From the NCBI GenBank assembly GCA_973895155.1, contig OZ316898.1, positions 21,290,022 through 21,354,021 of the forward strand: a stretch of 64,000 nt of DNA, written 5' to 3'. The stretch comes from Marsupella aquatica (Eukaryota > Plantae > Marchantiophyta). Under the pieces are notes generated by a model. That model did no database searches, was not told the origin of the DNA, and was given only the letters and a program-made list of their open reading frames with translations. Positions 1-64,000 of the stretch are shown piece after piece (position 1 is the first letter of the stretch; the number at the start of each line of letters is the position of its first letter). A program made the translations under genes and the position numbers.

Positions 1-5
1 CCAAT

Positions 6-5601: not shown

Positions 5602-5637
5602 CGGTGCAAGGGCACCGTTCCTTTTAGGGAGGGCGGA

Positions 5638-7811: not shown

Positions 7812-10800
7812 ACTCCTTGTCACCAAGGGGAGCGGTGCTGTGCCATGAATTAAGCAAGGCTGAGTGGGAGGATGGAAGGCACTTTAAGATTAGCATCGTG
7901 GAATGTCTGCGGCCTGTGTGAGCCAAATCGTAAACATGTGATTAAAAATTGGGTGAGATCGCTGAAGACTCCCCTTGGAATTCTAGCATTACAAGAAGTG
8001 AAAGGGGATCAATTTCGACTCGACATGGCTCTCAGGGCAATTCTTCCTACGTATGAGCATTTCTCTGCAGCACCAGACGATGGACGGGGCGGAACCGCGC
8101 TACTGGTACACCCGGAGCTGAAGGTGGTGCGAATGGGGGTGTTGGACTTGGGCAGGGCGGTATGGGTGGAGGTGGAGGCGGGATCCGGGAGTTTTGGGAT
8201 TGCTAGTATCTACGCCCCCAACTCTGCACGATTAAGGGCTCTACTTTGGAATGACCTGAAAACTCTGCTCCCTCATAACGACTGGATTGTATGTGGGGAT
8301 TTTAACATGACGGAACGCAGAACTGACTCCACGGGCAATTCACCATTGATTCGAGGAAGGGAGGCGGAATTCTGGAGATTCTTTAAAATGAGATTCAATT
8401 TGATCGATGCTTGGGAGATCAGAGGTGGTGCAGTGGGCCCTCCTTTCACGTGGAGAAGAAACAGGAATGGGGAGATAGTACAATCTAGGCTCGACAGGTT
8501 CTACTTAAGTGAAATGGGATGGTGGTTGAATGAGGTAGTGGAGCTTCTACATGAGGGAGGTTCTGCGTTGTCGGATCACGACCCTGTGTTACTAAGTGTT
8601 AAGCTTGCAGGGGAAGAAGAGATGAACGAGAAAGGGAAAGTGAGACTGTTTATGGCAAACCCGGCGCTTTTGCGATGCAGAGAGGATTTGCTACTGCTTG
8701 AAGAGGCCTGGGTGGAGGGACGTGGGGACTGTGTAGAGCCTCTCAGAAGTTTTTGAAATGGGAGCTGGAAAATGCGCCACACATACAAAACTATTCAAGC
8801 CAAACCAAGGACGGCGGGGGTGGAGATGGCTTTTCTTCGGGCACGACTTTGTTCGCTCAAGTTGGCCATTTTAGAAGCTCACTCAGAAGTTGATATTGCA
8901 GATTATATGGAGGCAGAAGATACTCTACATGCAACGGAGATAGAGGAAGCTCACAGGGGTCGCAGGCTAGCCAGAATAAAGTGGTTAGGTGAGGGAGATG
9001 AATCGACTAAATTCTTCTTTGCCACTGTGAAAGCTAAGCGATCTCGTGAAGCGATGACTTCTCTGATCGGGAGGGACGGTAGATCTATCTTGGACCCCCA
9101 GTTAATCCTTAAAGAAGTTGAAGATTTTTGTGTGAACCTGTACGCACCTACTGCCTCTACAGTGGACGAGACGGAGGTGAGGAGAGCTGCCAGAGCAAGA
9201 TTGCTGAGGAATACTCAATTTGCGCTCTCTGGAGAGGAGATCCTTCAGATGGACAGGCTACCAACCTACCAAGAGATAAAGGATGTGTTGTGGCTACTAC
9301 CAAATGACAAATCCCCTGGCCCAAATGGATTGACTGCTGAGGTCTACAGAGCTTGTTGGGGATTTCTGGGACAAGACCTGGTGGATATGATTCAGGAATT
9401 TTGGCTTTCTGGGGCTCTAGATGCTGGAATTTGTGAGGGGATAATTAAATTTATACCTAAGAAACCTGATAAGCGCTTTTTAAAAGATTGGAGACCATTA
9501 ACCATGTTAAACACGATTTACAAGCTGATTGCAAAGATCCTTGCGCTGCGGTTGAAACCTATTCTTAACAGGATCATTAGCCCCCAACAGACTGGATTTA
9601 TCCCGGGGCGACATATTCTGGAGAACATCTCTCTTGCTTGGCTTACATGTGATTGGGTGCACAACCGAAAGAGAGAAGCCTTGTTCCTGAAGCTTGATTT
9701 TGAAAAGGCGTTTGACAGAGTTTGTCATGAGTACATTTGGGATTGCATGCACTTGTTAGGGATTAGTGGACGATTTATTATGCTAGTAAAAGCGTTGCTG
9801 GCACAGGCTTCTTCTCGTGCTCTGGTGAATGGCTTCCTCTCTAACTCCTTTGAGCTGAAGCGTGGTGTTCGACAGGGCTGCCCCCTGTCGCCGCTGCTGT
9901 TTGTGATTTCCACTCAGCCAACTCATGGATTTTCTTGCTGCGGAGATGGAAGGAGGACGATTAAATGGTTTGCAGATTACAGAGGATTTCAAGATTTGCT
10001 ATAGACTCTTTGCGGATGACGTGGGGATGTTTATCCCGGCTACAGAACAGGATTTTGAGGATACAAAAACTGCCCTGGAATGCTATGAGACAGCCACCGG
10101 TGCGAAGCTGAATTTGGAGAAATCAGTGGTGATTCCCTTGGCTATGGAGATTGTAACAGAGTGGCTCAGAAAAACAGGTTGCCTTATTAGCGGGAGAGGG
10201 GAGATTCAGAAGTACCTTGGTGCTCCATTGGGCGTGGGGCTGCTTACAGAGCAACTCCACAAGTTCTGCCTCGAGAAGATCAGCTCTAGGCTGTCAGCAT
10301 GGTCAAACAAATTACTCTCTTTCACCGGACGCTCCCTGCTTGTGAAGCAAGTCTTGCTTGCTATCCCTATTTATCATGTTATGTACTGCAAAGCCTCTGC
10401 TGGATTAGCAAAGAAGGTAATTGCTCTCAGCAGAGACTTTTTATGGGGTTATAATGCGGTTGGAGGCAAGAAAATTCCTCTGGTGGCTTGGGATAGGATG
10501 GCACGTCCAAGGGTGGAGGGTGGACTTGGATTCAGGGATTTTCGCAGCCACTGTGATGCTCTTCTTTCACAATGGTTCACTAAGGCACTTAACTTCCCGG
10601 AGCTGGAATGGTCTCGGATGTTGGCAGCAAACTTATCGTTGATGGGATGGATGAACTATAAGGTTATTAGAAGAAATGGCTATTCCTTCCAAGACCAGCT
10701 CTTACTCTGTTCACCTCGTTCATTTAGTGGTCTACCTTACACGACAGGTTTGTGGAAGAGTTGGGAACTGGTTAGGGCTCATCTTTCATTTGAACCTGGA

Positions 10801-11104
10801 CGAATGGGACCGCCAGCGAGATGGAGCATCTCTGACACTCTTAGATGCATGGTTGGCTTCAATTCGCTGCCCAATGCGACAATTACGACTATTGCTGCGA
10901 TTTGTGGCAGACTGGGAATGAGGACTGTTGGGGATGGATGGTCGACGGAGGACAGATGCTGGAAGGACCTTCCTTTGAGATGGCACAACATTCAAAGTAT
11001 TTCGGCTGAGCATCGGCTGTTGGCCAGGTCATTCTTGGAGCGTCTGTGGAGCACAGATTTCTGTTGTACTGAATACTTCCTGTATGCCAAGCAATGGCGC
11101 TGGA

Positions 11105-11489
11105 TGTTGAGCATAGACGACGATCGCAACGGCAAGCCCATGAACCATCCAACGCACAATAGTCGACACAAGAGATACGTGGTTCACCTCCTTGAGGCTA
11201 CGTCCACGGGAACACACAAGAGAGCTTTACTGAACTCTAAGCCCGTCGGCTATACCGAGTCTCCACAGTGTAAGCTCTCCCTATCTCTCAAGTGGCTCCA
11301 TAACAATGAGCCTTGGTTCTACCTCTCCAAGCACACATGCCTCTTATGATATAGTGTGCAACTTAGTTGTACCTAACCACATAGTTGTACCTAATCACGT
11401 AGTTGTACCTAACCACGTAGTTGTACCAACCCACGTTGTTGTACCAACCACGTCATACCTAACCTAGACGTAAGAGTAAATACCCAACA
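11105..11489 (-). repeat. Copia 3' LTR (385 bp)
   Basis: TGTTGAGC...CCCAACA on +. Adjacent purine tract on the minus strand at 11490-11500. Confidence 0.95.
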
Positions 11490-11680: not shown

Positions 11681-14600
11681 CTACTTGTGATGCAATTGCA
11701 AAACCTGCAATACGTCACGGTGTCTAGAGAAACTCTCCAAAGGAATCACTTTGGTAAATGCGTCAGCCGGGTTGAGTTTACCATCAATCTTGACTAGCTC
11801 AAACAAATTATCAGACACAGTCTGCCTGATAAAATGGTACCTGACGTCAATGTGCTTCACTCTGCTGTCCATCACTTGGTTCACAGCAAGGTGGAGCGCA
11901 CTTTGACTATCACAATGGAGCTTCACATTCCCCTGTGGCAATCCCATTTCAGTGATAAGTCTATCCAACCAAATCGCTTCCTTTGCTGCTTCCGCAGCTG
12001 CAACATACTCCGCTTCTGTAGTAGACTGAGCAATACACTTCTGCAAAGTAGACCTCCAACTTATGCATCCACCGCCAAGTGTGAACACGTATCCTGTTGT
12101 TGATCTCCTTCGGTCCAAATCTTGTCCATAGTCAGAATCTACATAGCCAATCAATGATCTAGCATTCTTTGCATTCGCATCAAATAAAAGACCATGATCC
12201 ACGGTACCCTTCAAGTACCTGATAATCCACTTCACTGCTTCCCAGTGTACCTTCCCTGGATTCGACATGTACCTGCTCACCTTGCCCATAGCCATGGCAA
12301 GATCAGGTCTAGTGCAAGTCATCAAATACATGAGACTCCCCACTGCCTTGTCATATGGAACCTTTGACATCAACCCCTTCTCTGTGTCATCCGTAGGACA
12401 GAACGCTGATGATAACTTGAAGTGTGGAGCCAACGGGGTACTTACTGGCTTGCTATTCTCCATGTTGAACCTTGCAATTACCTTCCTCGCATAACTGCTC
12501 TGCGTCAACCATAGCTTGCCAGCCTCCAAGTCCCTAGTGATCTCCATACCCAAAATCCTCTTAGCTGGCCCTAAGTCTTTCATCTTAAACTCTGCACTAA
12601 GCAGTGCCTTGAGCTTAACAATCTCAGACCTATCCTTGGCTGCAATTAGCATGTCATCCACATAAAGTACTAAAACAATGAACCCAAAGACAACATTCTT
12701 CACCGGTTTCAAATACACACAAGGGTCAAATACACTTCTGTGAAAATCTTGTGACCGAATCCAATCGTCAAACCGCTTGTTCCACTGTCTTGGTGACTGC
12801 TTCAACCCATACAAGGATTTCAGCAATCTGCAAACCAATTCCTCCTGTCCTCTCTTCACAAAACCTAGCGGTTGTCTCATGAAGATCACCTCTTCCAATG
12901 TGCCATAGAGGAAAGCTGTGACAACATCCATCTGATCTAGGAGCAGACCAAACATTACAACAAGTACACACAATAGTCGTATTATAGAGTACTTAGCAAC
13001 TGGTGAGAAGACCTCATTGTAATCCACACCTTTCTCTTGTGTGAATCCCTTTGCTACCAATCTAGCCTTGTAGACCTTCGATCCACCTCCTATGGAATTA
13101 TCCTTCAGCTTGTAAATCCACTTGCTGTCCACCACTTGCTGACCCTTAGGCAGCTTAACAAGCTCCCAAGTTTTGTTGTCCTTTAGTGACTGCATCTCCG
13201 TTTGCATTGCTGCAGTCCACTTCTGCTTCTCTTTTGAAGCACTTGCCTCATGAAATGAAGAAGGTTCTCCTTCTTCCAAAATTAACGCATCACCCTCATC
13301 ATCAGCTGTAAAATCATCCTCTTGCAGTTGAGATGAATCAACCCACTGTCCATACCTTGATGGAGCGCGTACAGTGCGACCAGATGTTCTTCTAGCCGAT
13401 GACTCCGGTTGATCTGCGTGTGCTGGTACAATTTGAAGCTCAACAGCATCCACTTGTTGCTCACCAGCATCAACAAACTCCTCTGGTTCCTCTGGCATAG
13501 GAACCAGCTCCATAATTGGAGCAACTCCTTCTCTCCGGTCATGCACCTCATAACCAATCTCCCCCTCAACGAGATCCGGGATAGGAGATTTTCCTTTGTC
13601 AGTACGGGAGACCTGAGTATTCTCCCCCTCCTTCAATAATCTGGATTCATTGAAGGAAACATCCCTACTAACAACGAGCTTACAGGCAATAGGATCCCAT
13701 AGCCTATAGGCTTTCACACCACTCTGGTACCCAAGAAAAACACATTTCCTGGAGGTAGGATCCAACTTGGTCCTATTCTGCTTTGGTGTGAGAGCATATG
13801 CATCACTTCCAAAAACTACCAAGCCATGATAGTCTGCTTGCCGCTTATAGCGCATCTCAAACGGCGTTTTGAAATTGATAGCACTAGAAGGAGAAAGATT
13901 TACCAAATAAGTTGCGGTATTGACAGCTTCTGCCCAAAATTCTTGTGGTAAACCTGATTGGCTCAACATACTCCGTGACCGCTCCAACAGTGTCCGATTG
14001 AGCCTCTCAGCGACACCATTCTGCTGCGGAGTATAAACTATGGTGAGATGGCGAGTTATCCCCTGTTCTGAACAGTACTCTTCAAATTCCATTGAAGTGT
14101 ACTCCCCGCCGTTGTTTGACCTCAGACTCTTCACCCTTGTATCCAAACACTTGATCGTGTTTCCAGTCTGATTCTCCACCTAGGCCTTCCACTTCTTAAA
14201 AATGGACAAGACATCAGACTTATGCGTCATGAAATAAATCCACACAAATCTTGAGTAATCATCAATAAATGATACATAGTACAACTTTCCAGAGTATGAG
14301 GGAGTCGGGGATGGACCCCACACGTCACTATGTATGTACTCAAGAACCGCTTTGGAACGATGAGTTCCAACACCAAAAGCACGACGATGCTGCTTTCCAA
14401 GAATGCAATGCTCACAAAACTCTAATTTACAAGATTGCAAATCAGAAATGAGTCCATTCTTCCGTAAGATAGCCAAACCCTTCTCACTCATGTGGCCTAG
14501 CCGTGAATGCCACAGTTGAGTCATCTCCTCGTGAGACTTGGTTACATTGGCCTCTCCACATACAGTATTGCCCTGTAACACATACAAATTCTTTTGTCTA

Positions 14601-15988
14601 CTCCCCTTCAAAATCACTGTCTCTCCCGACCTGACTTGAAGTTCACCATCAATAACGTTCCATTGATGACCATTTGAATCCAACACACCGAGTGAAATCA
14701 GATTCTTACGCATGCCAGGTACATACCTGACTCCGGATACTGTGCGCACAGCGCCATCAAACATTTGAATCTTCACAGACCCAATTCCCTCAATTTGACA
14801 GGAGTGATCATTTCCCATCAGAACTGAACCGTTTGAAACAGAGTAAGAACTGAAAAACTCACGAATGTAACAAATATGAAAAGAGCAAGCACAATCAAGA
14901 ATCCACACATCATCTGCTCTCCTAGATGACGTGCACAGGGCATACCCCCGGCTTCATAAAACATACTCATCATTGAGTAAATCAGCTTCTCCATCAGCCA
15001 CATTTGCCGATGAAGTTTTCGCTGCCTTTCCCTTACAGTCTTGCTTGAAGTGTCCAACTTGGTTGCACTTCCAACATGTCACCTGCCTCCTCTGAGGGGA
15101 TTTACCCTTGGACTTAGATCTGGATTTAGATCTAAACTGGGTTCTACGGTCCCCAGTTGGTCGCTGCATACTCCTCCCACGGTTAACATTGAGGGCAGCA
15201 CCAGATGATGAAGGCTGTGACGTGATGTGCATCTTCTGCTGAAGATCATCACTAAGCAGAGAACTTACCACGTCATTGTATGAAATGGTATCCCTATCAC
15301 GATGCAACAACACTCGTGATAGGGACTGGTAAGATGGAGGCAATGAACTAAGAAGCTACAGAGCCTTCGTCTCATTATTCAAAGTCTCCCCAAGGTTTTC
15401 CAAGTCAACGACCATGTCGTTGAAAGCATCCACATGGTCTTGCAACTTCGTACCAGATTCCTTCATCCTGAAACTCATCAGTTTGTAGGAAGTGTAGAGC
15501 CGGTTCGACAACTCCTTGCGGTGATACTTGCTCTGCAATTCCGCAAACAAGGACATGCAATCCTTATGTGCACCTAACTGCTTGATGATGGGAGGCATGA
15601 GATAGAGTGTAACACACCACACTCCCTGCTCCTGCATGCGGTCCCATTGTTTCTCATCAACATCGTCTTCACGAGTGCTCAGCAGTTGGCCCATCCCTGA
15701 CGCATAGAGCACTCCCTTCACCTGCTTCTCCCATAGCAAGTAGTCAGAGCGCCCATCATACTTTGTCACTTCATACTTGGGTCCCCCAAGCTTGAAAGTC
15801 CCCATCTTCTTCTTTGGCACTACCGTGAGCTCCGGTAGTAGTACTGCTTCCTCCACCACACGCCGCACCGGTGATGGTATCGGTGTCACGTGCTCTTCCT
15901 CCTGCTCCTCTCTCTGCCCCTGAAACCGCCGCGGTGATCCTCGTGCTTCAAGTTCCACGTCTTCAAAAAATTCCTCCGAATCACTCAT
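11681..15988 (-). pseudogene. Copia gag-pol polyprotein, single frame with three in-frame stops (15356, 14954, 14180)
   Basis: Knuckle CWKCNQVGHFKQDC; protease WILDCAC; GAG-pre-IN WHSRLGH..CEHC; IN HSDVWGP/QQNGVAER; RT YKARLV, QMDV, LYGLKQ, LYVDDM; RH SSTTEAEY-like (QSTTEAEY), KHIDVRYHF. Confidence 0.93.
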
Positions 15989-17560: not shown

Positions 17561-20084
17561 CTGGAGTGACAATGCGGGAGCTGGTCTGAGGAACTTCAGG
17601 ATTGAGAACTGTCGAGTATATGATTTTTTGAGACCCAAAACCTCTACTCATGAGAGGCTGAACAGGATTTGGTCTCTCTCCCAACCGGAGCTGGTTTGGA
17701 ATGTGGGATGGACCAAGCTATGGAGCTCTGATTTGCCAGTCAGAGGCAAGACCTTTATATGGAGGATTATTGTAGGGGGTCTTTTCTCTGGAGAGCGTGC
17801 GCTCAGAATCGATGTAAGCAATGGAGACTGCAAACTTTGCTGCGGGGTATTGGAGACTATTCCCCATATTTTTTTCAGATGTACACATGCAGTTAGAAGC
17901 TGGAGCATATGTCAGGCCTTTCTTAGTGGATTGGGTATGCCATTCGGACAAGGTCTGAATGTCTTGTTGGAGGCTGCTTGTGGGAAAGATCAGAAACAAG
18001 TTGCACAACTTTTTGTTTTGCATCAGATTCTGTGGCGACTTTGGATGGGGCGGAACACACAAATGTTCCATTTGCATGGCAGACGCTCATTTGATTTGGG
18101 CCTGGTTCTTACTGAGGCGGCTGAGAATCTGTATGCGGTTAGTCACCGTTCTCTTCCGGGTAGGAAATGCACCAGACTTCTTAGGGCCAAAACCTGGATT
18201 GATGAGAGACGTAGGGGTTGGCTCTCTTTTGGCAGCGGCTGCATCGTCACTGGGATGTGACTGGCTGGTTGTTTGTGATGTGACTCGTAGCCCATGTGAT
18301 GAGTAGGGGGTAGATGCGGTTCTTTTTCCCTGTGCTTTTTTGTGCTTGTTGATCCTGTGCCCTTGGTCTGCCCCAACACTAGTGGGGACTGCCCTGTGGC
18401 GGGGTCTGTTGTCTGGCCGTTTTGGGCCTTCTTTGTTCGCCCTTCCCGTGGGGTTTTTCGCGGGGGAACATCAAAATTTATAAAATGATCTCTTTCAAGG
18501 AAAGTTCTACGGTAGTACAATAGTTCAGCCAATGGTCAATAAGAATAATTACTCCTCCAGTTGCACTCTGGCCTCCTTCTCCACTCTATGACTCTACAGA
18601 GTACATACTCTCCGTTGTTCAACGGGCCAACGGGTTTTTGTGCATCTCCAGAATCTCTATTCTGTGCATCATATACTGCCATTTCCCACCCTAAATCATA
18701 AATTCATGGGGTTCCGTGCAATTCGTACCCTAAACCCCGGGATAATAATTATCCGAGTCGGCGCACCAGTCCGAGTCCACCTGGGTTGTTTTAGTATATA
18801 CAAACATGCTATCATGGTTTTCGTATATTCCCACCCTGGTAACTTTGTTAAATTTAACTTCTTTATGTGAAACCCTGACGGATTTGTAAATACAAAGATA
18901 AAACCACGCGAGTATTATCAGTTTCACCATCTTCAGTGCCAAAGTAATTCAGAGTTGGTGTTTCTCATGTGGATGCATGAGAAACAAAAAAAGACAATCA
19001 AAACCAGGATGGAAGCTTCGAGTTGGTGAAGAACCGGCAAGCTTGAACGACTTTTCATATCCAGGAGGTTTGAATGTGTGTTTCTAGCATTGCCCCCGGC
19101 ATTGCCGTGTGGTTATGTTGAATGTTGTTTTACATTGCAAGTAATAGTATTGTTGCTAGTTTTGAATTAATTAAGGGCGATTAAGGGCAACATTTAGGGT
19201 AACTAATTATTAACGCAGATAAGGTGTGACATTAACCTGGCCTGTCATCGAAAATGGGTTTGCACGGTCACAATAGGATGAACTGGAAATTAAGAACAAG
19301 TATCAAAGCACTTATGTCAACAATGGGAGTGTATTGTTGGACGGTAATGGAAGAGCGTGGCTGGATTTAGGGTTTAGACCAAGAACTAGAATTTTCCAGA
19401 ATCTTAAAATTAATCATGACTTTATATGCAAAATAATGCGCAACCTTCTTAACCCTAAACCCTAAACTTCAACTTACGTTTCCATGATACTAGATTATTC
19501 TTCAAATTTTTGTTGCAAATACCTATGATAGATAAATTATATTGGATTCATGTAAGAGAGCATACCGAATTTCATTTCATTCTTTTTATGTGGGAAAAAT
19601 TTAAGAACTACAGGGTAAAGATCATTCCTGTGATCATTCGTTTACAGTAGTTTCAATGTTTGGAAAAACCATAGCAAATACAATGTAAATAATATTTTAT
19701 TGATGTCTTACGTGCATGATACTTGCAAAGTAATGCAAGTCTCATGCACAGTGATTTAGGGATTCTGGGCACATCTCAAATATGATTTTCTTGCCATTTT
19801 AGATTCTAGCGAGCGCTACCAAGTGTAGGACACTAGGAATATGAAACCAGTATGTGGGTCTAGTTGGGATGTGTTTTTAACATTGAGCTTTAATTTCCAA
19901 CCATTTTTCTATCAATTGAACTCTACCAAACGGCAAAATTTGTTTGTTGCCAAACAACCATTTCCCTATCAATTGGACTCTACCCAAAGGCAATGTTTGG
20001 TGCCAAAAAATTAGGAAATTTGTTCTTTTTTATTAATAGAAATGAAATTAAAATTGGGCAAAGTTGTTTTAAATTTTGAGGTCA

Positions 20085-51606: not shown

Positions 51607-53013
51607 TCACAAGCCATTGGAGTGGGGTATATAATATTTCTTCACTCTGGATCCATTGATTCTGGTATCAAGAGGTTCTCCATTCAAGGTTTCCAAAGTT
51701 AAAGACCCATTAGGCCATACGGTAACAACTCTGTAAGGGCCGATCCAGTGAGTGTGAAGCTTCCCAGGGAAGAACATATACCTAGAGTCATACACAAGCG
51801 CCAAATCTCCTGGCTGTAGTGTCGGTATTTTTAACCTCTTATCATAGGCCATCTTCCGTTTATCCTGTTGTTGTATGGTATGCTGTAACGCTAGAAGTCT
51901 ATGTTCTTCTAATTCATCCAGAACTTCCAACCTAGTGTGGAAACTATCAAGTTCAGGTAACCTCTCAGAGATCAGAAACCGTTCAGTAGGTAGTTCAAAT
52001 TCAATGGGGGTAACACTATGCATACCAAAAGTTAAGTAGAAGGGCGTTCTCAAGGTAGTAATCTTTTCTGCAGTTCTGTAAGCCCATAAAGCAGAGTGGA
52101 GTTTGATGTCCCAATCCGTTTTATGTGCTTCCACCATTTTATTCAATATTTTTCCCATTAACCCATTAGCTCTTTCAGTCAATCCGTTAGCTCGGGGATT
52201 ATAAGGGGTGGTCTTTCGATGCTTAATCAGATATTTCTCAGTGATGAGCTCAATTGTCTCATTAAGGAAGTGCAGGCCTCGATCACTTACCAATTCCAAG
52301 GGACAGCCATACCGGGTAATAATGTTTTCAAATAAGAAATTGGCGGCTGTGGCAGCGTCATTCTTCCTAGTATGCTTAGCCTCCACCCATTTGGTGAGGT
52401 AGTCCGTAGCAAGAATGATATATCTGCTTCTACTTCGTCTAGCAGCAGGGGAAATGGGGCCAATAAAGTCTATCCCCCATTTCTCAAATGGAGATAGAGG
52501 CAAAATGGGAGTTAGAGGCCATTTTGATGTTGCAGTAGGCTTCCCTATTCGCTGACAAGGGTCACAGCTTTGAATGTAGTTATAAGTGTCCTTATGCATG
52601 GTAGGCCACCAAAATCCAGCGTCCTTAATTTTCTTAACAGTTGTATTTACGGCATAGTGTCCACCGGAGGCTTCAGTGTGTAAGGCTGAAATGACCTTTG
52701 GAACTTCTTGAGCTTCCAAGCAACGGTGAAGTCTCTGATTTGGCAATAATTTAAATAGAACACCCCTCACAATAGTATATGGTCCTACTTTGTAGAGGAA
52801 AACAGCTTTTTCTTCTGCATTCAACCCTGGTGGATAAATTCCGTGAGTAAGCATCTGAACAATGTCAAAGTACCTTGATTCCTCTCCTTCCAAATGCCAT
52901 AGCTGTTCGTCCGGAAATTGATCAGACAAAGGTTCGGCACTAGGATCTCCAGGCAATCGTGATAGGAAATCTGCATTCTCATGGTGTTTCCCGGCTCAAA
53001 CTTGTACCTCGTA
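51607..53013 (-). pseudogene. pol: Integrase of family B (plus last RNase H residues)
   Basis: YEVQV*AGKHHENADFLSR; HHCC; WGIDFIG, SDRGLHF, NGLTER; WIGPY. Clearly similar to 6-1874. Confidence 0.93.
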
Positions 53014-53469
53014 AACCCTTAAACTCTTAAACTATTAAACACTTCAACTCTTCAACTCTTAAACTCTTAAACTATTAAAGTAGGGTTTACTCGTAAACCC
53101 GTAAACTCTTAAACACTTCAACTCTTCAACTCTTAAACTCTTAATCTTCGGCAGAGTTTAGTTTACTCGAGTTATCAGCAAATATAGTTTAACTACTTCA
53201 AAAATTTAAAAATTTTCCGGTTTTCTTCATGACTTTGGAATTACTGCCTATCTACAAGTTGTCTACGATCAAATAAAACAAATTCAAGATTGCAGTGGAG
53301 TGTTTGCTTTCAAATTGGAGCAGCAACAAAGAACATGGTCGGACATGTGCTTGCGGAGGTTGGACATGTGCTCACGGAATGCAAGTTGGTGCTGAATGAA
53401 ACTGCCGTGTTCCATGTCAGTGCCGAGGGCCCGTGCGTGGGCCTTCTTTCGACCAGACAATAAAACAAA

Positions 53470-54151
53470 TTCAAGATTGCAGTGGACTGCCTGGAGAAAG
53501 CTGGCATCCAGTACAGGAGGTTTCATGGGTCCTTGGGGCCACTGGGGCATGCCGCGCTGATGGAGGAGTTCAGGACGTGCCCGGAGGTGTGTACGTAGGG
53601 CAACTACACCACCTTGCTTCAGGGTTTAGGGTCGTTCAAATGAACTATCAAACCAACTCAATTGACCTGCCTGTTTCTTACATGTTTCTTTGCTGTGCAG
53701 GTGAGTGTCATTCTGATGTCCTTGCTTTCACGCGGCGTTGGGCTAAACATCGAATACGCCAATCATGTTTTTTTCTTGGACTCTTGGTGGAATCCAGCAA
53801 TGGAAGACCAGGCCATTGGTCGAGCACATCGAATAGGACATAAGAAAAAAGTGTATGTGACACGAATCATTCTAGAGGAGTCGGTTGAGGAGTCGGTTTT
53901 GGAGCTGCAGGTACGTACCGGTTTCTTAAGAAGCTTTCTTCAACAATATGCTAGCTTGTATACATAGTTTGCCGAAACCGTGAACCCTTCAAACTCTCTA
54001 CCTTATTGTCCCACTGTTTTGACTGTAGGATATGAAGCGTAACATGGCTCAACAGCTCTACGAAGGAGGTGGGGCCGCATTCAGACCTAGTACACAATCT
54101 GACAGCAGTGTTTCGAGAGATATTGAGTACATATTTCGCCAGTCTTGCTAA
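53470..54151 (+). pseudogene. RAD5/RAD16-like SNF2 helicase C-terminal fragment; exons ~53470-53586, 53701-53910, 54029-54151
   Basis: Spliced: CLEKAGIQYRRFHGSL...EEFRTCPE|VSVILMSL..GVGLNI..ANHVFFLDSWWNPAMEDQAIGRAHRIG..VEESVLELQ|DMKRNM. GT-AG introns 53587-53700 and 53911-54028. No N-terminal ATPase lobe seen. Confidence 0.85.
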
Positions 54152-55251
54152 TCACCGACGGGCTTTGGAGTCAGTTGGCCGTGCACTCGCAATATCACTT
54201 GAACTGTAAAAGCTGCTGCTTGCACAATCAGGCCACAGATTAATCCCTGGCTGTGTTGGTCTTATCGATGGTTCTTTGCTCCCCTTACCTAGACGTCGTT
54301 TTGCTAATGGGGAATGCTACTGTGGGGAAAGAGTAGATACTCAGTCAATGTGCAGGTGGTCTGTGAAATGAAATGTTTGCCTTTTTCCCATTTTCCAGGA
54401 ATGCCTGGCTTAAGGAAATGACCTCTTTGGAAGTTCTGCACAGATGTAAATAGTAAAATCTGGTGGGTGACACCGAGTACCAGGCTTTACCTCATGTAGT
54501 TTGTGCATTCAAGAGAGCAGACATGGTACATGACAAAGAGGATTTCAACACTTGGTGTGGCAGAGTGCCGTGGTACATGACAAAGAGGATTCCTCCCCTG
54601 ATTTCATCTGTCCACGGTTAGATTAGATATTCAGCGACTGGAGACATCCAGACAATTGACAATTTGGAAGAAGTAAGATGTGCTTAGACATCCTTGCCTC
54701 TCTACTCTCGCACTTCGACACGGAAACTTACGACTGCTTTGTTGCAGATGTTCCGAGAGGGAAGAAGCAGTAGTAGAGCCAAGGCTAGAAAGAGCTACGG
54801 TGGCATTTTTAGATTGCAGTAAGGAGAGGAGTAAGAGGACGGCCCCTTTATGTTTTGGGTTTTTTTGGGTGCTTTTGTTCCAATGTGCTATAAAGCCCAT
54901 TTCAATTAATCTAAAAAAAATTCAATTAATTGAAAAATACCTCATGGCCTTTTGGTATACATGCCCCCATTTGCTTGTAGACGGGCTACCGTAGTATCCT
55001 TCAATTCTGCCTTGTTGGGAGTCTGTTTCCATGCTTCGCTGTCCGTATACTGCGCGACTCTCGTGTAGAGCCTTAAATAAATCTTTACTGTGAAAGCGAT
55101 ATGAAAACATAATTCTACAATAATCATGCCGGAACACGGCACGTGACTGGACACTGTTCCCGGTGCACACTTGGCCACACGTTTGGACTAACACAATAAA
55201 GTTTTCCGTGAAAGCACACTTAGGGGGTGAGAAGCAGGGCAAAGCCTAAGT

Positions 55252-55668
55252 CACCCTGTAATCTTCATGTGGGCAGCCCCATTGAGCTTTGGAGAGGGAG
55301 AGCAGCAACGCCAAGTTGAGGTCGTGGAGAGGGAGAGCGCATCGTCGAGCTTGGAGAGGAAGAGTGCAAGGTCTTTCACTAGCAGGGGTGCAACTAGCAG
55401 TGGACAACAGCGATTACAACTTCGTGTAGGCAGCGATTTCGATCAGCAACAACAGCGATTAGAGCAACAATAGCATAGATTTATATATATCAGCGATTAC
55501 AACAGCGAGTAGCGAGCAATGTCAGAAATGCTCACACTGTGGAAAGTGTGAGGGGATGTCAGAAATGCTCACGGATCATTAGCTATAGGATTTCACCTTG
55601 AGTTTTTGACAAAAATGTCTTTTTATGCTCTACTTTCACGGTAACTACTCTTTTAGAATTACAGGGTG
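55252..55668. mobile_element. Non-autonomous CACTA/CMC-like element (417 bp)
   Basis: 11-bp TIR CACCCTGTAAT/ATTACAGGGTG with 3-bp TSD AGT (55249-55251, 55669-55671). Confidence 0.65.
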
Positions 55669-56083
55669 AGTGGCCCATCTTTTCATGGGCTGCTTTTACG
55701 GAAAACTCTATTATAGACGCATCCGGTTATCAACTTCTATGACCTCTGTGCCCTCTGTAGCCTGTATACACTCTGTACCCTCGGAGTTTTTGCATCCTTT
55801 GTATCCTCTTCCAACTGCCAAACCCAGGTTTTCTTATGATGCAAGTTTGGCTATTCGGTTAAATCAACTAACTCCTACATGGAAGCTGGCCCCCTGTCTC
55901 GTTGGCAAACCCAGAGCTGAGTTGCTTGCTCCCCCGCTTTGAACCCTGTGGTTCTGATTCTTCTACGCGGTAGCTGAAGGAAGGAAAATACGATACTTCT
56001 ACACGGTGGTCCACAGAACAAATCCAAGCCACACAATGTACTACGATTCCCAAAACTCAAACTGTCAAAGTCTACATCAATAT

Positions 56084-59000
56084 TCAGACAATCGATTTCC
56101 TAAATAGGCTCACAACAATTCTTCTCCTAGCGGAATCCATGTCCTGAGCCGTGAAATCAAAAACCATGTCTAAACTACGGTACTCAGCAAATTTCATGAC
56201 AAATACGCCACAGTTGTAGTTGTCGGTTTGGCGAGGAATGTCCTTGCGTGCGTGCCTGGGCCACTCACGAGCCCAAAGGTGCTTCTGATTTTTGGTTCTC
56301 AATTCGTCATCCATGTATTTCGCCAAATTTTTCAGAACATCCGGCTCTTCACCGTGAAGGGAATCCAGATACTCTAGGCATTTCTCGTTCTTGTCAATGA
56401 CGACCAACGCCCAATGGCTTCCGCCATGGACGTTAATAGGGACAAAAATACGATCACAATCAAGCAAGAAATACGTCAATTTTGAGGTCCATGACTCCAC
56501 CGCCGCATAATTATAACCATTCCTTGTGAGTACCGAGTAGAACCAGGTATCAAAGAAATGGCACTTGAAGACTCTCATCCATGATCTGTCTTCCATCGCT
56601 TTGATGAGACCGAAATACGCGTTCATAACCTCGGAAGTTATCCATTCTCCTGGAGAGAGGCATCTCATTTCTTTCCAGGTTATGACGCAACCATTAGCGG
56701 TGCTCACTAAAACTGCGTCTTGATCCAAGTCAGGGCTCAGGCAGAAGTCTATGACGCCGTCGTCGTCCACCTGGTCCGATGGAGGGTTTTCTTTTGGTGA
56801 CTCATTGACAGTAGTAATGGATTTAGTTTTTTGGACCCGGGCACCTCTTTGAATCGCAGGCTCCACGATAGTGCTATCCGATACTCCTCCTGGATGATGA
56901 ACATGAGCCGCGACGACGGACTTTTGACCCCAAACTGGGGTGCTATTATTATTATCATTGGAAAGACAATAATGCGGAAGATCGATATCGCGGACGATCG
57001 ATACTTGCGATTCTCTTAACAAGGACTGTCCGGATAATAGACCCGCCGGCACTACTGCCCCATCAAACAACTGAGGCACGTGGCGGTCATGACCGGCTTG
57101 CACCGCACACGAGAGCGAAGGCAGAACCGCTGCCAAACTGCCCCGCACGTCTGTGTCTCCTTGGAGACCCTTGTCCACAGCGCTGTCCATTCGCATACTC
57201 GCAGGATAGTGACCACTGGCTGCCCTGGCATTCAAATCTTGTGTGGAGCAGCCCGGTGGTCTCCACAATGACTTTGCAAAGCTCGACACCTTGTCGAGAG
57301 ACTTCATGTTCTCGGCATACGCCGTGAGGTCCATGACGTCCTCCCTGTCGGAGCAGAATGAGAAGCACTCACGTTCCAAGAGTAGTGCATGCTTCAGAAC
57401 CTGCCCCCTTGTAAAGAAATTGAGCACTATTTCCTCTTTTTTTGAGAAAGCTTCTATTATAGCTTGGATTATTCGCCCGGGCTTGATATTGGTAGTGAAG
57501 GAGCGGCCGCTGGGCGATCTGAACGGAACCCAATTTTCCAGCCTAACTTTCATCGCCGCTTCTTTGATGCTAGCCATCTCCCCATTGGGACGGTCCGTCG
57601 ATTGTTCCTTGCTTGCCTTGTGGAGCTCCACTCGGTCTCCGTCTTCGAAGCTGAAATGGCCAGTGAAATTCTTGAAATGGGCTTCCCAATCCGGTTCCCT
57701 GTCTTGGGAAACGCCGAGAAAAATCACAGTTTCCACCACACCTCTCATGTGCTGCCGCGGGAGAAGCTCAAAGGCATTCTTGAAATAGGTGCCATATTCA
57801 AGATGGGCATTATAGTTATCGGGGAGACATCGCGCCGCCTCAATGATCCGTGCTAGAAGTATTCCCGGATGCACGAAAAAGACGAGGGTCAGTGACTCAT
57901 TGGCCGAAACATTGACGACAATTTTCAGAAAATTCAATATTTCTGATTGTGTCCACGTATTGCCCTCGGTGTGTGTCAAGTCCACGATCGCAAGAGATGC
58001 CACAATACTCTCACTACAGCTAGAGCAATCGAACGGCGGCTCGGCCAAAGCGAGAAAATTTCCAGTGTAGAAAATTCTATAGGGATCCATCCTCGACCGA
58101 ATATGTCCGCCAAACTTCTTCAGATACAGATTTCGTAGCCTATTTTTCAAAGCCTCCGGCATGTCGGCCCTCTCGGACACCTTCACCAGGCTCCTGAAAT
58201 ATCCGGCATCGACCAATGCGCAACAGCGATCGAGTTCATCATTCATAAAATCAAACGTCCGAACGACGTCCACCTAGAGAGCACCGGCCGAAAACAATCG
58301 GTCATAGTTTGCGCGATAGAATCGTAGGATTGCGCCTTTCAGTTTGTCCGTATACTTTGCCTTTGCTGCCAGGTCGGACATAGTCGGCATATCAGTTAAA
58401 GCGTGTTTCTGTCTAATCAACAACACATCACCCGAAAGGACTTTCATGAAGACGTCGGTGATGTTGGATTCTCGTGCGCCCTCGAACACTTGGAACGTAC
58501 TTCTGTTTAACCTCTTTGCTTCCTTTGGTTTGTAAGTAACCTCTCCAATGTTGTCGGGCAAATGTCCTTTCAACCAATTGTTGCAAACCGCTCTCCACAG
58601 TTTGTACAGGTCTTCCGAGGTGAACAGGATCCAGTTGTACTCGCTGATGGTACTCACCTGCAGCGTGAGTTTTGCAAGCGCCTCGTATTCCTGATCATTA
58701 TCAATCATAAATATGTGAATCAAAGAATTACACACGCTGTGTACACTACATACCCTGCATACCCATTCACTAAAACACTTAAAAATGTAGTAATGATTTT
58801 CTGCCCACCCATCATATACATAAACACAAAATCCTCCATATACTACCTGGAATTCGGTGGACTTCCGCCCAGAAGGAAGTGGACGAGCTGGACGACCCAT
58901 TTTGCTGTACTGCAACCGGGCATGCTCCACCTGATCGATGAATGGAGATGAAAACCTGTGTGCTTCGGCTTGCATGTTGTTTGCATGGGAAATCTCCACC

Positions 59001-59863
59001 AGAACTTGTGCAGGGGTCGAACCCTTCAAGATTCGAGCCCGTCAATATTTCAATAACTTGGCAGTTTGCATCAACGCCGGTTGGGTTTGCGCACTCCTAA
59101 TTATCCTCTTTGCAGCCATTGCCGAGTGTTGTCCACTGATTGCAAAATATTTTAATTCGGACAACTTGTCGGAATCAGAATCTAAAACAGATAGGTCGAT
59201 GAGTTTGTAAGCCCCGTCGATGCCAATGCTGTAGGCAACCAGATCTGCAGGTAGTGGCTCCTGACCAGCGTTGGTAATCATGAGTTCGACGAGGCGATTG
59301 ACGTGATCGTCATTCAGTAAACGCTCGTTCATCTTGGCTGGCGGAGTGTGGATATTGTCCACTGGAACCGCGCAAAGCGTAGATAGTCCAAAGGAATACC
59401 AACACTCTTACAACTGCAAAGTCCTCTCTGCATTTTTGAGACGAGAATGATCGACCAACAATGTTGAACTATCATCCACATTCAACTTGACGGTGTTGAT
59501 CGACACCCTTTTCTTCTTCTCGACCCTGCTCGTGTCCCCTTCCTCTGTCTTTGTTTTCGCTCCACATGCTTGTTCAATGTTCTCCCCTTTGCTTCTTTTC
59601 CCCGTTTTTTTTGGCATCGCCTGAGGTTTCTGTTTTCCCGATGCCTCCCCTTTTTGTGCTTCCTTTCCTTCTTCCCTGGCTGCTGCTGCTGCTCTCTCTC
59701 TCGTGACGACCTTTCTTTTGGCTGCTTTCCTAGACGTCTCATTCTCCGGCCCGGTCTTCATTTGGGGTTCCTTGTCTTCGCTCCTTTCAACTTGCTGCCT
59801 CCCTCGTGTGCTTGGCACCGTCAACTGTTTATCGTCCCTATTTCTCTTTTTGTGATTTATGAA
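56084..59863 (-). pseudogene. ParB/DGQHR-like + beta-class N4/N6 DNA methyltransferase-like + Ulp1 (C48) protease fusion, downstream part
   Basis: Four ORF calls in one frame, separated by single stops (59408, 59042, 58274). Probable 156-nt GT-AG intron 58691-58846. YFAISGQHS; KPGRIIQAIIEAFSKKEEIVLNFFTRG; HWALVVID, YLDSL, QTDNYNCGVFV. Ulp1 call is strong; ParB and MTase calls are moderate. Confidence 0.75.
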
Positions 59864-62800
59864 CTTAGCTTAGTGGGATTGCGGTTCCACTGGTAGGAGC
59901 AACACTTGTTGTGGTGCGTCCCATGGCTCCCTAAACCCAAGAAACCCCCCAGCTCAAGCCGATTCCCGCAGGTTTCGTGCTTGGCGAGGCCGTTTCCGCG
60001 GCTTAGCGGCATGGGACGCTGCTAACCTTCTACTACTACTATTAACATTTTACACACATATACTGGACAGATCCTTCATCGGGTCATGAGATACGTAGCC
60101 GGCCTAATATAGGCCTTCCCCTGTCTTCCCTTGTCTTCCCCTCCGTCTTGTTAGGTATGTTTGGATTCCGCCGCCGGAATGATCCCCAATAGGCTTGGTT
60201 AAGCCGCTAAGACCTCTCTCAGCTCGACACATCCAACTATCACTCCCCTGCTTACTTTCCTTCCTTCTGTTGTTGTGGGCACTCTTCACACAAGTTAATG
60301 CGACACACAAATAGCAAAATGACTCATTCTGACTGAGTCATACCATGCACTTGCCATACAAACAGTACATCTCATACACAAGTTCTGCGAACTAAGCCGT
60401 GAGGCCAACTCTATTCAGCTCTTAGGCATGAGGAAACATGAATATACACAAGGGTCACTGTATGACTAACCGAGAGCTTCTCGTACTACTTGATCCCAGC
60501 CCGGCTGGTGCAAACTAAAAACTTGCTAAAGAAGAGGCCCTGAGCTCCCCGCTGCCCAGGTACTTATCCTGGTAGTGGATCCGCCATTCTTTGCATCGTA
60601 AGCCTAATCTACCTGACAGTAATCTACTTGCCCGAATCTACCTATGTACAGCAAGGCAGGAGCACAAGTGTTGCTCCTACCAGTGGAACCGCAATCCCAC
60701 TAAGCTAAGTGTCAGGGCCGCTCCTGGTTCTGATCCTAATCCTAAACGTGGAGATCCGCGCCCGCCCTGCCCACTCATGCCTCCTCCCTCCACGTCCGCC
60801 CTCCCTAAAAGGAACGGCGCCCTTGCACCGTCACGACACCGGTGGTGGATCCTCAATGGACGCCCCCAACACTTCCTCCTCAGCCACTGTCGTTGGCCCG
60901 CCTACTGACAGATTACCTGCCCTTGACCGAGTCAACTCTCCATCGGCCTGACTGGGTCCACCTTCGGCTTCAGCCTCGACACCGGCCTCGGCAATACCCA
61001 TGGCTTCGGCCTCAGCCACTCCCACGGCTTCGGCTTCAGCCACTCCCTCGGCTTCGGCCTCCCCTTCCCCTAGGGTAGTTGGATCCTTAGCCGTGACCCT
61101 GTCTGGGGTCGGTGCTGGGTCTACCTCCTTGATCACCACGGCCTGTGAAGTCGTATTACTCCTTGACCCTGAAGGTTTCCGCTTCTTCTTCGTTGGTGGC
61201 TCGGCAGCTGGTCCCTTCCCCTTCCCACTTACTTCCGGCACTGGTGCAGTTGACGCGGCTTGTCCTTCGGCAATTACCACCCCTGGTAACTGGTTTGTCC
61301 CAACGGGAGATGGACCTGCTGCAGCTAAGCATTTAAATACTGCGGCTTGTTTCTTCAGCCGCTCTGTTTGGTTGTCGGCCCGCCGCTGTAGGTTCTCCAT
61401 CTTCCTCGTGATTTCCTCCAACTCCTCTTGGGTTTCATCCAGGTCCTTATGTGCCCCCTCCAGCTCGTTTTTGGCCTCCTCCTGCTCCCTGTGGGCTTCC
61501 TCCAATTCCTTCTTCAAGGTAGCCCTCTCCTCCTGGGTTGCTCTTAGCTCCTTGTCGAGCTCTGCAATGATGACAGACTCCATCTGGTTCATCTTGGCGT
61601 AAGTCTGTTCGAGCATCTCGTCCTTCTCCCTTAGGTCGGCCTTGAAGCTGGCCGTCAGGGACGCAAGCTCCTGCTGCAGCGCCATAATCCCTTGATAGGA
61701 TTTCCCTAACTCGACCTCCTTCTGCTCAAGGGCTCCGCGGATTTTCTCGAGCTCCCCTTTCAACGCCCATTCCTTTCTTTGGGTCTCCGCCATGGCCCGG
61801 CTGTTGGCTGTTATGTGGGCCTCCTCTGTATTCTTCAGCTCTTGCTTCCACTTCTCCCTCTCTTTGATCGTGTCGGCCAACTCTTCCTGCGTCTGAGTCA
61901 GTTTATCCTTGATATTCTGATTATCAGCCTGCGCGGCGTCCAATTGCCCCTGCATGATGTTCAGCTCATGTCGTTTAATCCGCAGTTCATCTTGGGCTTT
62001 CTTGGCCGCCCTTAGATCTTCAATCTCGGCTTCCATCCTCCTAAGCCGCCGAATGACCTCGTCCTTCTTGCTTCTCTCTAAAGCCACCATTTCTTCTAAT
62101 TGGTGCTTCTCCAACTGCTCCCTATGGAAAAAGGGTCCTACCTCCAACTCCTCTCCAAAGATGCCGAGCGCAAGTTCCCCACACATCTCACCATACTCCA
62201 TGGCTCTATTCTTAGCGTAGGTGGAGTAAGTAGAAGTGATCGGCATCGCCCATCGTGGCCTCTGCTCCCAAGCCGTCCTGCGGATCTCTTCAATCGTGGC
62301 TAGAGGTTTGCTTCCTTTTTCGGCTAGCCGCCTGATGTCCTCCGGCCAATCTCCTCCTGGTAAATCCTTTTCCTTAGCCAGGGCGGCCTCTTCCTCCTGC
62401 TTGATTCGCTCCTGAAATTCCTGCACCGTCTGTTTTATGCCGTCAAAGCTCGGGGGAGCAACATCTGGTGGGGGAGACTCAGGGCTACTCTGCTGGTTGG
62501 GGTCCCCTCGCACTACCCTTGGAAGTGTGGGGACAAACCGGCCATAGGTCCTTACTCCTGGAACGTGATGGTCCGACCCATAGCCGGAATTATCATGGCT
62601 GCAGTCCTCCACTGCCTCCTCTACCTCTTGGACGTCCGGCTTCTCCCTCTCCTCTTCCTCGGTAGGAGCTTCAGGCAATTCTGCCTCAGATTCGGAGCTT
62701 GAGGTTCCCACGTACATTCGAACACCTGGCTTGGATTCCGGCCTGATTCTCTCCTTGTCTCCAGCAAAGGGGTTTTCTCTTGTGAGCCGGTGTAGGCCTA

Positions 62801-63155
62801 CCTCTGTAGTAGTGTCCTGCATTGTTGCCGTTGCCGTTGTTGTTGCCGATGCCGATTTCTTTTCTTTCTCCAGTAGTTTCAGCAGACTCTGCATGCCTGG
62901 TTGCTGCATCGGCTCCTTACCCCTCTCCTCTGCCGGTCCTTCTTCCCGTTGATCCTTCCTAGCCGCCGACGCTTAACGCGCCCTAACCCTAATCGGGTTT
63001 TCACCCTCAGCCTTACCTCCGGCCTCGGCCCGGGTTCCATGGTTGCCCCTAATTGTTTATATTTTCCTGGTTTTGTCCCTATACTAAGGTGTTCCTAGGG
63101 TGCCTTCCTGCTTTACCCACTTAACCGGTCGAGTGATTCCTGTCTAGGCATCACA
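59864..63155 (-). mobile_element. Rearranged fragment of Ty3/gypsy family A (copy 2): last codons of pol, deleted accessory ORF, 3' LTR, plus a short inverted LTR piece
   Basis: Near-identical to 1863-6512 minus 2107-3520. LTR 59910-60794. 59863-59909 is the exact reverse complement of 60664-60710. Confidence 0.92.
60831..62909 (-). CDS. C-terminal 692 aa of the family A accessory ORF (coiled coil), uninterrupted in this copy
   Basis: Matches 3523-5601 with few substitutions and no internal stop. Confidence 0.7.
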   Translation of the reverse strand: MQQPGMQSLLKLLEKEKKSASATTTATATMQDTTTEVGLHRLTRENPFAGDKERIRPESKPGVRMYVGTSSSESEAELPEAPTEEEEREKPDVQEVEEAVEDCSHDNSGYGSDHHVPGVRTYGRFVPTLPRVVRGDPNQQSSPESPPPDVAPPSFDGIKQTVQEFQERIKQEEEAALAKEKDLPGGDWPEDIRRLAEKGSKPLATIEEIRRTAWEQRPRWAMPITSTYSTYAKNRAMEYGEMCGELALGIFGEELEVGPFFHREQLEKHQLEEMVALERSKKDEVIRRLRRMEAEIEDLRAAKKAQDELRIKRHELNIMQGQLDAAQADNQNIKDKLTQTQEELADTIKEREKWKQELKNTEEAHITANSRAMAETQRKEWALKGELEKIRGALEQKEVELGKSYQGIMALQQELASLTASFKADLREKDEMLEQTYAKMNQMESVIIAELDKELRATQEERATLKKELEEAHREQEEAKNELEGAHKDLDETQEELEEITRKMENLQRRADNQTERLKKQAAVFKCLAAAGPSPVGTNQLPGVVIAEGQAASTAPVPEVSGKGKGPAAEPPTKKKRKPSGSRSNTTSQAVVIKEVDPAPTPDRVTAKDPTTLGEGEAEAEGVAEAEAVGVAEAEAMGIAEAGVEAEAEGGPSQADGELTRSRAGNLSVGGPTTVAEEEVLGASIEDPPPVS

Positions 63156-63881
63156 CACTTCAAGCATTTCCTCTAGCACGTTGCATCTACCTTCCACACC
63201 CCCATTACCCCCGAATCTGCCTAAATGAGATGGATGACAAGGTTCCAGCTTCCTTGTTTTTGGCCCTGATTTGGACAAACGTCCAGCTTGACGAAGAACT
63301 GGATGCTTACGGATCCAAGTTTTTACAGAATCGCGACTGAATTCGTTTGTGAAAATTATAGCTTTGTCGATAGTTATCCTCTCGCAAAGCTCATCGTCAC
63401 CTATGGTACGCGCCATGATGTGTGCCATCTCTCTGGTTCGGGACAGGAAAAGTCCATGTCTGTGATTCAATAAGAAGTTTACCCTACCAAGCCCGTAAAG
63501 TATATCATCACAACATATGTCACGATCCTCATCCATGAACGACTCACAAGTGGGATCAAAGAATCCGTGCGATGTGATGTTCATCCGGACATCGTACGGT
63601 TTGAGGCAATGTGCACAGCAGAATCTTCCAGCAAGTGCGACAAATTGCTTGAAACTCAAACCTTCAAGATCCTCCACTGTTATGATGAGCTGCCTCTCTC
63701 CCGGCCATCGCTTGGGATCGGCAGTTACACAACAGTCCGCGACTGCACCAAAAGTGACCCAGCGTTTCTGCTCCTTCTTGGTTGCTATGCCTCGAAGGAC
63801 ACACCGCCACACGCCCATCACTTGCATCAATTCAAAAGACCATGATGGAACCGATTCAGAGATACGAGCATATCCCTTCAC
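63156..63881 (-). pseudogene. Cys-rich ORF of unknown function, probably the upstream part of the 56084-59863 gene
   Basis: Its final CDA* (63144-63155) comes from the inserted element. Joining 63156 to 59863 gives in-frame EEMLEV|FINHKKRNRDD. Confidence 0.55.
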
Positions 63882-64000
63882 TTTAGGTGTCTATAGCGGC
63901 AGATGGCTCAAATCGCAGAGAAGCGGTTCAACTCCTACGATCGAGCAACAAGCAAAGTATTTAGATTTTAGCACCACAAGAACACGGACGAAGGTGTTTC

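Follow-up and report, generated by a model that had tools for sequence, protein, structure and literature searches.

Do the broken open reading frames (ORFs) at positions 56084–63881 of a stretch of the liverwort Marsupella aquatica genome form one gene, and what would its product have done? The stretch analysed here, hereafter the window, comprises 64,000 nt of contig OZ316898.1 (positions 21,290,022–21,354,021), and its right-hand part had been read, from the letters alone, as a pseudogene fusing a ParB/DGQHR-like domain, a DNA-methyltransferase-like domain and an Ulp1 SUMO protease (the original prediction). Comparison with homologous sequences indicates that the locus is a dead, pseudogenised copy of a multi-copy gene, interrupted by a retrotransposon. 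In the reading that we favour and consider probable, this repeated gene joined a conserved N-terminal module to a methylase-derived domain devoid of the catalytic motif and to a SUMO protease, and this copy was interrupted by a long terminal repeat (LTR). The predicted order of the parts, from the N-terminus to the C-terminus, is a Cys-rich segment, a K/R-rich linker, a module with the motif SGQHS (possibly ParB/DndB-like), a middle region, the methylase-like domain, a spacer and Ulp1/SENP (Table 1).

One reading frame with three in-frame stops and an intron

On the minus strand, 56084–59863 can be read as a single frame of 1260 codons, which is broken by three stops and closed by the natural stop at 56086–56084. 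Shuffling of the same bases gave a mean of 57 stops and a minimum of 35, and the remaining five frames of this segment contain 31–67 stops each. All three stops sit within blocks that can be aligned to intact homologues, and homology spans every one of them (the queries for the searches were single exons or pieces between stops). The proposal that the separate ORF calls are one frame broken by single stops was thus upheld. At position 59408, contigs of other copies from three public runs carry G in place of T, giving a sense codon at stop 1; directly after this stop, the sequence YSFG...PV.NI is kept in all six assembled N-terminal modules. Judging from these alignments, the stops are recent damage within a genuine coding sequence. 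Several diverged contigs were found per run in four public runs, indicating that the gene is multi-copy. The three nonsense codons, together with NFFTRG at motif I of the methylase-like domain, agree with the prediction of a pseudogene with a degenerate S-adenosylmethionine (SAM) motif, and the motif coordinates given with that prediction were correct on rechecking.

An in-frame, AT-rich GT–AG intron had been proposed at 58691–58846. The G+C content of this segment is 33%, compared with 48–53% in the flanking exons, and the segment coincides exactly with the one large gap that BLASTP opened on alignment with P0039 (1009 amino acids, intronless), which, with P0042 (1219 amino acids), is a full-length intact relative from environmental assemblies. 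With its GT and AG ends, the segment is best regarded as an intron, as predicted. It is one base shorter (at 58828) in all four runs compared, indicating that its multiple-of-three length here is an accident and that the stretch is non-coding. The intron separates the N-terminal module from the middle region and is absent from both P0039 and P0042. A gap of approximately 112 nt was found at the same protein position in two homologue loci, L009 (between 926 and 1039) and L002 (between 95 and 208), so that distant relatives share the intron position seen at this locus.

The methylase-like domain lacks the catalytic motif

Against the Pfam profile N6_N4_Mtase, the window copy gave a sub-threshold match (E-value of 0.045; 14.1 bits, cut-off 26.7). 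When 1.84 billion representatives were searched exhaustively with HMMER, 36 relatives were found at E<=1e-3, and the Pfam cut-off was passed by the relatives P0004 (29.2 bits) and P0015 (27.6 bits). A profile of nine relatives matched M.RsrI with an E-value of 6.6e-7 over the motif X/motif I region. An AlphaFold (AF2) model of the 345 residues encoded by the window itself, based on a 22-sequence alignment, reached a predicted local distance difference test (pLDDT) score of 76 and a predicted template modelling (pTM) score of 0.72. The top 30 PDB matches of this model in Foldseek were all beta-class DNA methylases (E-values down to 8.8e-8, probability 1.0), among them the N6-adenine or N4-cytosine DNA methylases M1.HpyAVI, CcrM, M.RsrI, M.MboIIA, M.BceJIV and M.PvuII. 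The AlphaFold/Foldseek check asked for in the original prediction therefore gave a Rossmann-type match to beta-class enzymes. On the strength of the profile match and the model of the domain itself, its beta-class amino-methyltransferase ancestry, with motif I last as had been claimed, is real.

The domain resembles M.RsrI, CcrM, M1.HpyAVI, M.MboIIA and M.PvuII (PF01555) in its fold, in the order that places the SAM motif last and in motif X/I. Those enzymes, however, have (D/N/S)PP(Y/F/W) and D-x-F-x-G-x-G, whereas the window domain has none of the former and N-F-F-T-R-G for the latter and, unlike them, sits inside an intron-containing eukaryotic gene of approximately 1400 codons. In the window, motif X/I reads KPGRII...IVLNFFTRG (57356–57484), with NFFTRG at 57404–57421, and the motif-IV position is occupied by LAIVDL (57977–57994). 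The (D/N/S)PP(Y/F/W) motif of amino-methyltransferases holds the target amino group. It is absent in every aligned member of the family, in which AIVDF-S/A/G-R or a similar sequence is found instead (LAIVDL-T-H in the window), indicating that the loss of the catalytic motif is family-wide and not a defect of the window copy. As far as the sequences allow a judgement, the lack of the PP-aromatic motif makes it unlikely that a methyl group is transferred to an exocyclic amine. The sequence AEPPF, originally taken for the catalytic motif, was rejected as a candidate, since it aligns with non-conserved residues and LAIVDL is the structurally equivalent site.

Could the family nevertheless be a working DNA N4-cytosine/N6-adenine methyltransferase that marks its own element, of which the window copy is merely a broken example? 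The fold and the motif X/motif I region are clearly beta-class, nine diverged relatives share DFFSGG, VN..K and RE without variation, which may mean that SAM binding is preserved, and epigenetic self-modification has been proposed for an Ectocarpus protein considered below (PMC12477816). Yet the replacement of the PP-aromatic motif extends to every aligned member, the Asp of motif I is Asn both in the window and in the closest fragment, P0001 (NCFSCG), which are two liverwort-like sequences, and the TSPPY of the active N4-methylcytosine (4mC) enzymes of Marchantia does not occur in the family (bioRxiv 10.1101/2021.02.12.428880). We regard a working methyltransferase as improbable and retain the reading of a methylase-derived domain without its catalytic motif. 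A relationship to the active 4mC enzymes of Marchantia was likewise unsupported, TSPPY being missing from the family.

An Ulp1/SENP protease in the same ORF

The Pfam profile PF02902 (Peptidase_C48) matched the C-terminal domain with an E-value of 1e-34 (120.7 bits, cut-off 20.7) over profile positions 1–208 of 217. Human SENP2 matched with an E-value of 3e-31, and the His, Asp, Gln and Cys of the window, whose presence had been predicted, were all aligned to its catalytic residues. The His lies in GSHWALVVID (56393–56422), the Asp in YLDSL (56357–56371) and the Gln and Cys in RQTDNYNCGVF (56201–56233); the SENP2 counterparts of SHW, YLDS and RQTDNYNCG are VHW, YLDS and QQLNGSDCG. From these profile and residue matches, we take the Ulp1/SENP identity to be certain and the SUMO protease of this locus to be apparently competent.

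The longest open piece of the locus, 56084–58273, is an ORF of 729 codons that covers both the methylase-like part and Ulp1. This uninterrupted frame bears out the prediction of one long gene as opposed to juxtaposed genes, and the single ORF for the two parts is confirmed by this locus, which otherwise contributes not much more than one well-documented dead copy. Relatives from outside the liverworts lack Ulp1 and carry another C-terminal module (SHYVWVEGP...EYGSFV) at their end, as would be expected if Ulp1 and the upstream core were two genes joined in the window copy only, by an accidental deletion or read-through. That a single ORF of this length spans both parts in a copy otherwise collecting stops speaks against such an accident, which we consider highly improbable, and we continue to read the protease as a genuine part of the gene. 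Capture of Ulp1 by plant transposons is known, for example in the KAONASHI-type Mutator-like elements of Arabidopsis. As in those elements, a C48 domain is found here on a gene of a plant repeat family; in contrast to them, the domain forms a fusion with a methylase-derived module in a single ORF, and its catalytic residues are intact.

The conserved N-terminal module

The alignment of the N-terminal module comprises six sequences with 29–72% identity to the first and contains 13 invariant columns, including S-G-Q-H-S, which lies at 59123–59137 in the window. This alignment indicates that the module is real and strongly constrained. The ParB/DGQHR-like identity originally assigned to it was not recovered. 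No ParBc match was found in Pfam, NCBIfam or PHROGs, no ParB structure was among the PDB matches of a six-member profile of the module, and hhalign comparison with YubM and SopB of the F plasmid gave probabilities below 1%. A homologue search with the ParB domain of F-plasmid YubM returned near-identical sequences only, which were of no use for a ParB profile, and the AF2 model of the module, from the six-sequence alignment, had a mean pLDDT of 39.8, too poor for a fold search. The middle region (58277–58690) was drawn as helices in this unreliable model.

The single positive signal was a weak Pfam DndB match over the SGQHS stretch in one of the six relatives (E-value of 0.0098; 13 bits, cut-off 29). 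DndB is a member of the ParB superfamily (PMC10853773), and the S-G-Q-H-S of the present family sits at the place of D-G-Q-H-R in DndB. The Asp and Arg of the DndB motif are, however, replaced here: none of the six members has Arg or Asp at the positions of the DGQHR/G-x-x-R nucleotide-binding motif, and no Dnd context is present. The match is more than noise because the family had been named beforehand in the original prediction; at the level of sequence comparison it may be followed as a lead, not taken as a result.

The LTR insert and the Cys-rich upstream ORF

The gene is interrupted upstream of the linker by an insert of approximately 3.3 kb, as predicted, and the insert was identified by its LTR identity and ends and by the uninterrupted site in contigs of other runs. 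Its LTR (3.25 kb, 59910–63155) is 98.8% identical to 6512–3519 and 98.0% identical to 2106–1863 of the same window, has the opposite orientation and lacks 1412 bp that are present in the 1863–6512 copy. A coiled-coil ORF of 692 codons (60831–62909) within the insert is part of the LTR and not of the gene. The contig depth of the LTR is very high, indicating a high-copy repeat. The copy with which it was compared belongs to window positions 1–6512, the 3′ part of a Ty3/gypsy-type element consisting of an RNaseH–integrase ORF (6–1871) followed by an unusually long LTR (4.65 kb, 1863–6512) with TG..CA ends, located after a polypurine tract. These ends, and the preceding polypurine tract and RNaseH/integrase ORF, identify 1863–6512 as the 3′ LTR; its own coiled-coil ORF (2362–5601) has approximately 1078 codons and one stop.

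The empty site was found on a 1430-nt contig from run X3, which runs from 59443 to 59865, continues with 16 other letters and then extends from 63156 to beyond 64000; the 16 letters themselves were reported for run X1. In the window, the 47-nt inverted segment listed in Table 1 stands in place of these 16 nt. No target-site duplication was found at the LTR insert, and this, together with the loss of 16 nt of the empty site, indicates that the insertion was not a simple integration; the junction of LTR and gene is an irregular insertion or rearrangement. The 16 letters plus 59864–59865 make 18 nt, that is, six stop-free codons, so that in that copy 63156–63881 and the downstream part form one continuous frame. 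The original prediction was therefore right that the two frames connect, whereas the direct join that it made on removal of the insert lacked these 18 nt. The locus thereby places a Cys-rich N-terminus in the same frame as the remainder of the gene.

Alternatively, the ORF at 63156–63881 may be a separate upstream gene or an untranslated leader that is in frame by chance. It matched no Pfam domain and nothing in the homologue loci, its first ATG is internal, and a stop upstream of it is found right at the edge of the window, which ends 119 nt upstream of the ORF. Its 242 codons are open, however, and in the uninterrupted copy it runs via six codons into the linker with neither a stop nor a frameshift. 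We consider a separate ORF rather unlikely and keep the Cys-rich segment as the N-terminal part of the gene. The K/R-rich linker looks like a nuclear localisation signal in its composition. Outside the lineage, no relative of either the Cys-rich N-terminus or the linker was found in the searches made.

Relatives of the core and their neighbouring genes

Both P0039 and P0042 consist of the N-terminal module, the middle region, the methylase-like domain and a different conserved C-terminal module, with neither Ulp1 nor the Cys-rich region, indicating that the latter two are lineage-specific additions to an older core. Together, the N-terminal module, middle region and methylase-like domain make up an old eukaryotic gene family, intact members of which are found in environmental eukaryote-like contigs, mostly beside a phosphatase gene. 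In four independent environmental contigs, a NIF/FCP1-type phosphatase gene (PF03031) is located downstream on the same strand, and the four phosphatases share 34–60% mutual identity. By this recurrence, the homologous gene and the phosphatase gene are recognised as a conserved two-gene arrangement.

Other searches returned few relatives. The 729-residue ORF found no homologue at E<=1e-5, and residues 60–420 of P0039 found two close relatives only. The family pattern had no relative in 185,579 bacterial and archaeal genomes, viral contigs gave none, metagenome contigs gave one short relative, and a degenerate DNA pattern for F-x-A-[IV]-S-G-Q-H-S-x-x-A hit 30 loci, all of which were chance matches to unrelated proteins. 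A tblastn search of phages gave short motif-I matches to phage adenine methylases only. With no prokaryotic relative recovered, the prokaryotic derivation proposed for the module is still inferred from the fold.

Rather than being carried by a transposon, the gene could also be a host gene in decay or one that the host has domesticated from a transposon. No transposase, terminal inverted repeat or palindromes adjoin the window copy, and a piece of a host-like SNF2 helicase is located 2 kb downstream. Against a host gene stand the several diverged copies per genome in four runs, the genomic surroundings, which apart from the SNF2 fragment are a nest of retroelements, and the published relatives, which are transposon-borne. 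We find a host or domesticated gene hard to credit and continue to treat the locus as a copy of a repeated, probably element-associated gene.

Published counterparts

The Ectocarpus element Sola1-1_Ec32 encodes an accessory protein of 1104 amino acids with ParB-like and DNA-methyltransferase parts, and similar proteins are cited for green and red algae (PMC12477816). Like the gene studied here, it is long and eukaryotic, with an N-terminal module labelled ParB-like followed by a PF01555-type N4C/N6A domain, and is multi-copy and repeat-associated. Compared by description, the window gene differs in that its methylase has no catalytic motif, Ulp1 and a Cys-rich N-terminus are added, and no transposase is visible. 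In red algae, as described with the Bostrychia genome, the Plavaka accessory genes PAG2 (PF01555 and SET) and PAG3 (ParB-like and 2-oxoglutarate oxygenase) lie beside inverted-repeat arrays; their authors propose that they act on the element's own arrays, and the ParB assignment is weak (HHpred E-value of 0.29; bioRxiv 10.1101/2025.02.11.637652). These are likewise transposon-borne PF01555 and ParB-like modules, but they are distributed over two proteins with SET and oxygenase effectors, whereas the window has one protein with a protease effector. Iyer and colleagues listed eukaryotic methylases that descend from phage ParB–terminase loci, as well as ParB-type helix-turn-helix fusions (PMC4738411).

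The gene matches the published description and is a land-plant variant of the 'ParB-like + methylase' helper genes of algal transposons. The original prediction did not recognise the three-domain fusion; its two-domain core had already been published for algal transposons (PMC12477816). In a limited literature search, we found no paper on the three-part fusion, or on the family, in land plants.

Proposed role of the intact protein

A working protein of this family would not methylate DNA. It would use its N-terminal module, together with the dead methylase scaffold, to bind DNA, most likely that of its own element, and would bring the SUMO protease, or elsewhere its phosphatase partner, to the element's chromatin. 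The effector so delivered would counter silencing or promote transcription of the element. We put forward only tentatively the possibility that the working protein is such a non-methylating DNA-targeting scaffold, delivering an effector (Ulp1; the phosphatase elsewhere) to its own chromatin. If this function were true, a plant transposon would have a second means, of independent evolutionary origin, of acting on its own chromatin. A bacterial-type DNA-methylase fold would then clearly have been put to new use as a scaffold that recognises DNA without catalysis and works with interchangeable effectors, namely a SUMO protease in liverworts and, elsewhere, the product of an adjacent C-terminal domain (CTD)-type phosphatase gene.

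A more specific proposal, which we consider quite doubtful, is that liverwort DNA transposons carry a DNA-guided deSUMOylase. In this proposal, the dead methylase and the diverged ParB/DndB-like module would do no more than recognise the DNA of the element, Ulp1 would deSUMOylate chromatin or silencing factors at that place, and an FCP1-like phosphatase would be the effector in other eukaryotes. Such a deSUMOylase, if true, would constitute an element-encoded anti-silencing system unrelated to the VANC proteins of VANDAL elements.

Several observations weigh against the reading of the locus as a copy of an element-borne targeting protein. The ParB label of the N-terminal module is unproven, given the negative results of the profiles, hhalign and the model. 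The Cys-rich part has no relatives among the homologue contigs and is linked to the remainder by frame continuity in one other copy. An RNA run containing the sequence, which would bear on splicing and expression, was looked for and none was found. The neighbouring ORFs contain no transposase domain, no terminal repeats were seen around the copy, no recurring palindrome family was found within 53000–64000, and a phosphatase gene was sought in the window and not found. The transposon-borne setting originally suggested is thus not visible at the window copy; the window stops 119 nt upstream of the gene, and the transposon context is consequently not shown here. Lastly, the targeting and anti-silencing mechanism is a hypothesis.

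Features of the locus and its surroundings

Table 1. Features of the interrupted gene in the window (in C- to N-terminal order) and phosphatase genes of the homologue contigs
Feature	Position	Strand	Evidence or remark
Ulp1/SENP (peptidase C48) catalytic domain	56087–56653	−	Pfam, SENP2
Non-conserved spacer, methylase-like domain to Ulp1	56654–57238	−	
DNA-methyltransferase-like domain, beta-class N6A/N4C fold	57239–58273	−	Relatives, Pfam, profile, AF2/Foldseek
In-frame stop 3, TAG	58274–58276	−	Aligned to Trp conserved across the family
Conserved middle region opening exon 2, NWILFTSEDLYKLWRAVCNNW...FEG...	58277–58690	−	BLASTP to P0039, E 3e-31
GT–AG intron, 156 nt	58691–58846	−	33% GC; matches alignment gap to intronless P0039
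End of exon 1, GSTPAQVLVEISHANN...RFSSPFIDQVEHARLQY	58847–59041	−	Conserved with homologues
In-frame stop 2, TGA	59042–59044	−	Aligned to Arg of P0039
Conserved N-terminal module, YSFG...PV.NI..P...R..N..HV...SGQHS..A	59045–59407	−	Six-sequence alignment; BLASTP to P0039, E 2e-10
In-frame stop 1, TAA	59408–59410	−	Sense codon in other copies
K/R-rich linker, resembling a nuclear localisation signal	59411–59862	−	24% K+R over 138 codons (59411–59824)
Perfect inverted copy (47 nt) of LTR-internal 60664–60710	59863–59909	.	Lies between LTR end and gene
Probable solo LTR of Ty3/gypsy-type retrotransposon (TG..CA), interrupting the gene	59910–63155	−	Identity to 3′ LTR 1863–6512
Cys-rich upstream open segment, 242 codons, 12 Cys	63156–63881	−	ORF translation; contiguous with linker in another copy
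Phosphatase genes	L001 3572–4510; L004 3339–4154; L007 4520–5605; L008 4374–5483		

Repeats are nested throughout the window. A LINE-like (long interspersed nuclear element) run with zinc knuckle, endonuclease and RVT_1 domains occupies 6825–11349 on the plus strand, followed by a copia-type element at 11681–15988 on the minus strand and a zf-RVT fragment at 17628–18260. Nearer to the gene, an 8-nt unit (CTTAAACT and variants) is repeated in tandem at 52975–53163, directly adjoining a retrotransposon integrase ORF (51607–52956, minus strand). The SNF2 fragment at 53662–53967 (plus strand) stands isolated, codes for the C-terminal helicase domain (Helicase_C, E-value of 5e-10) of an SNF2-type ATPase and is probably the remnant exon of a host gene.

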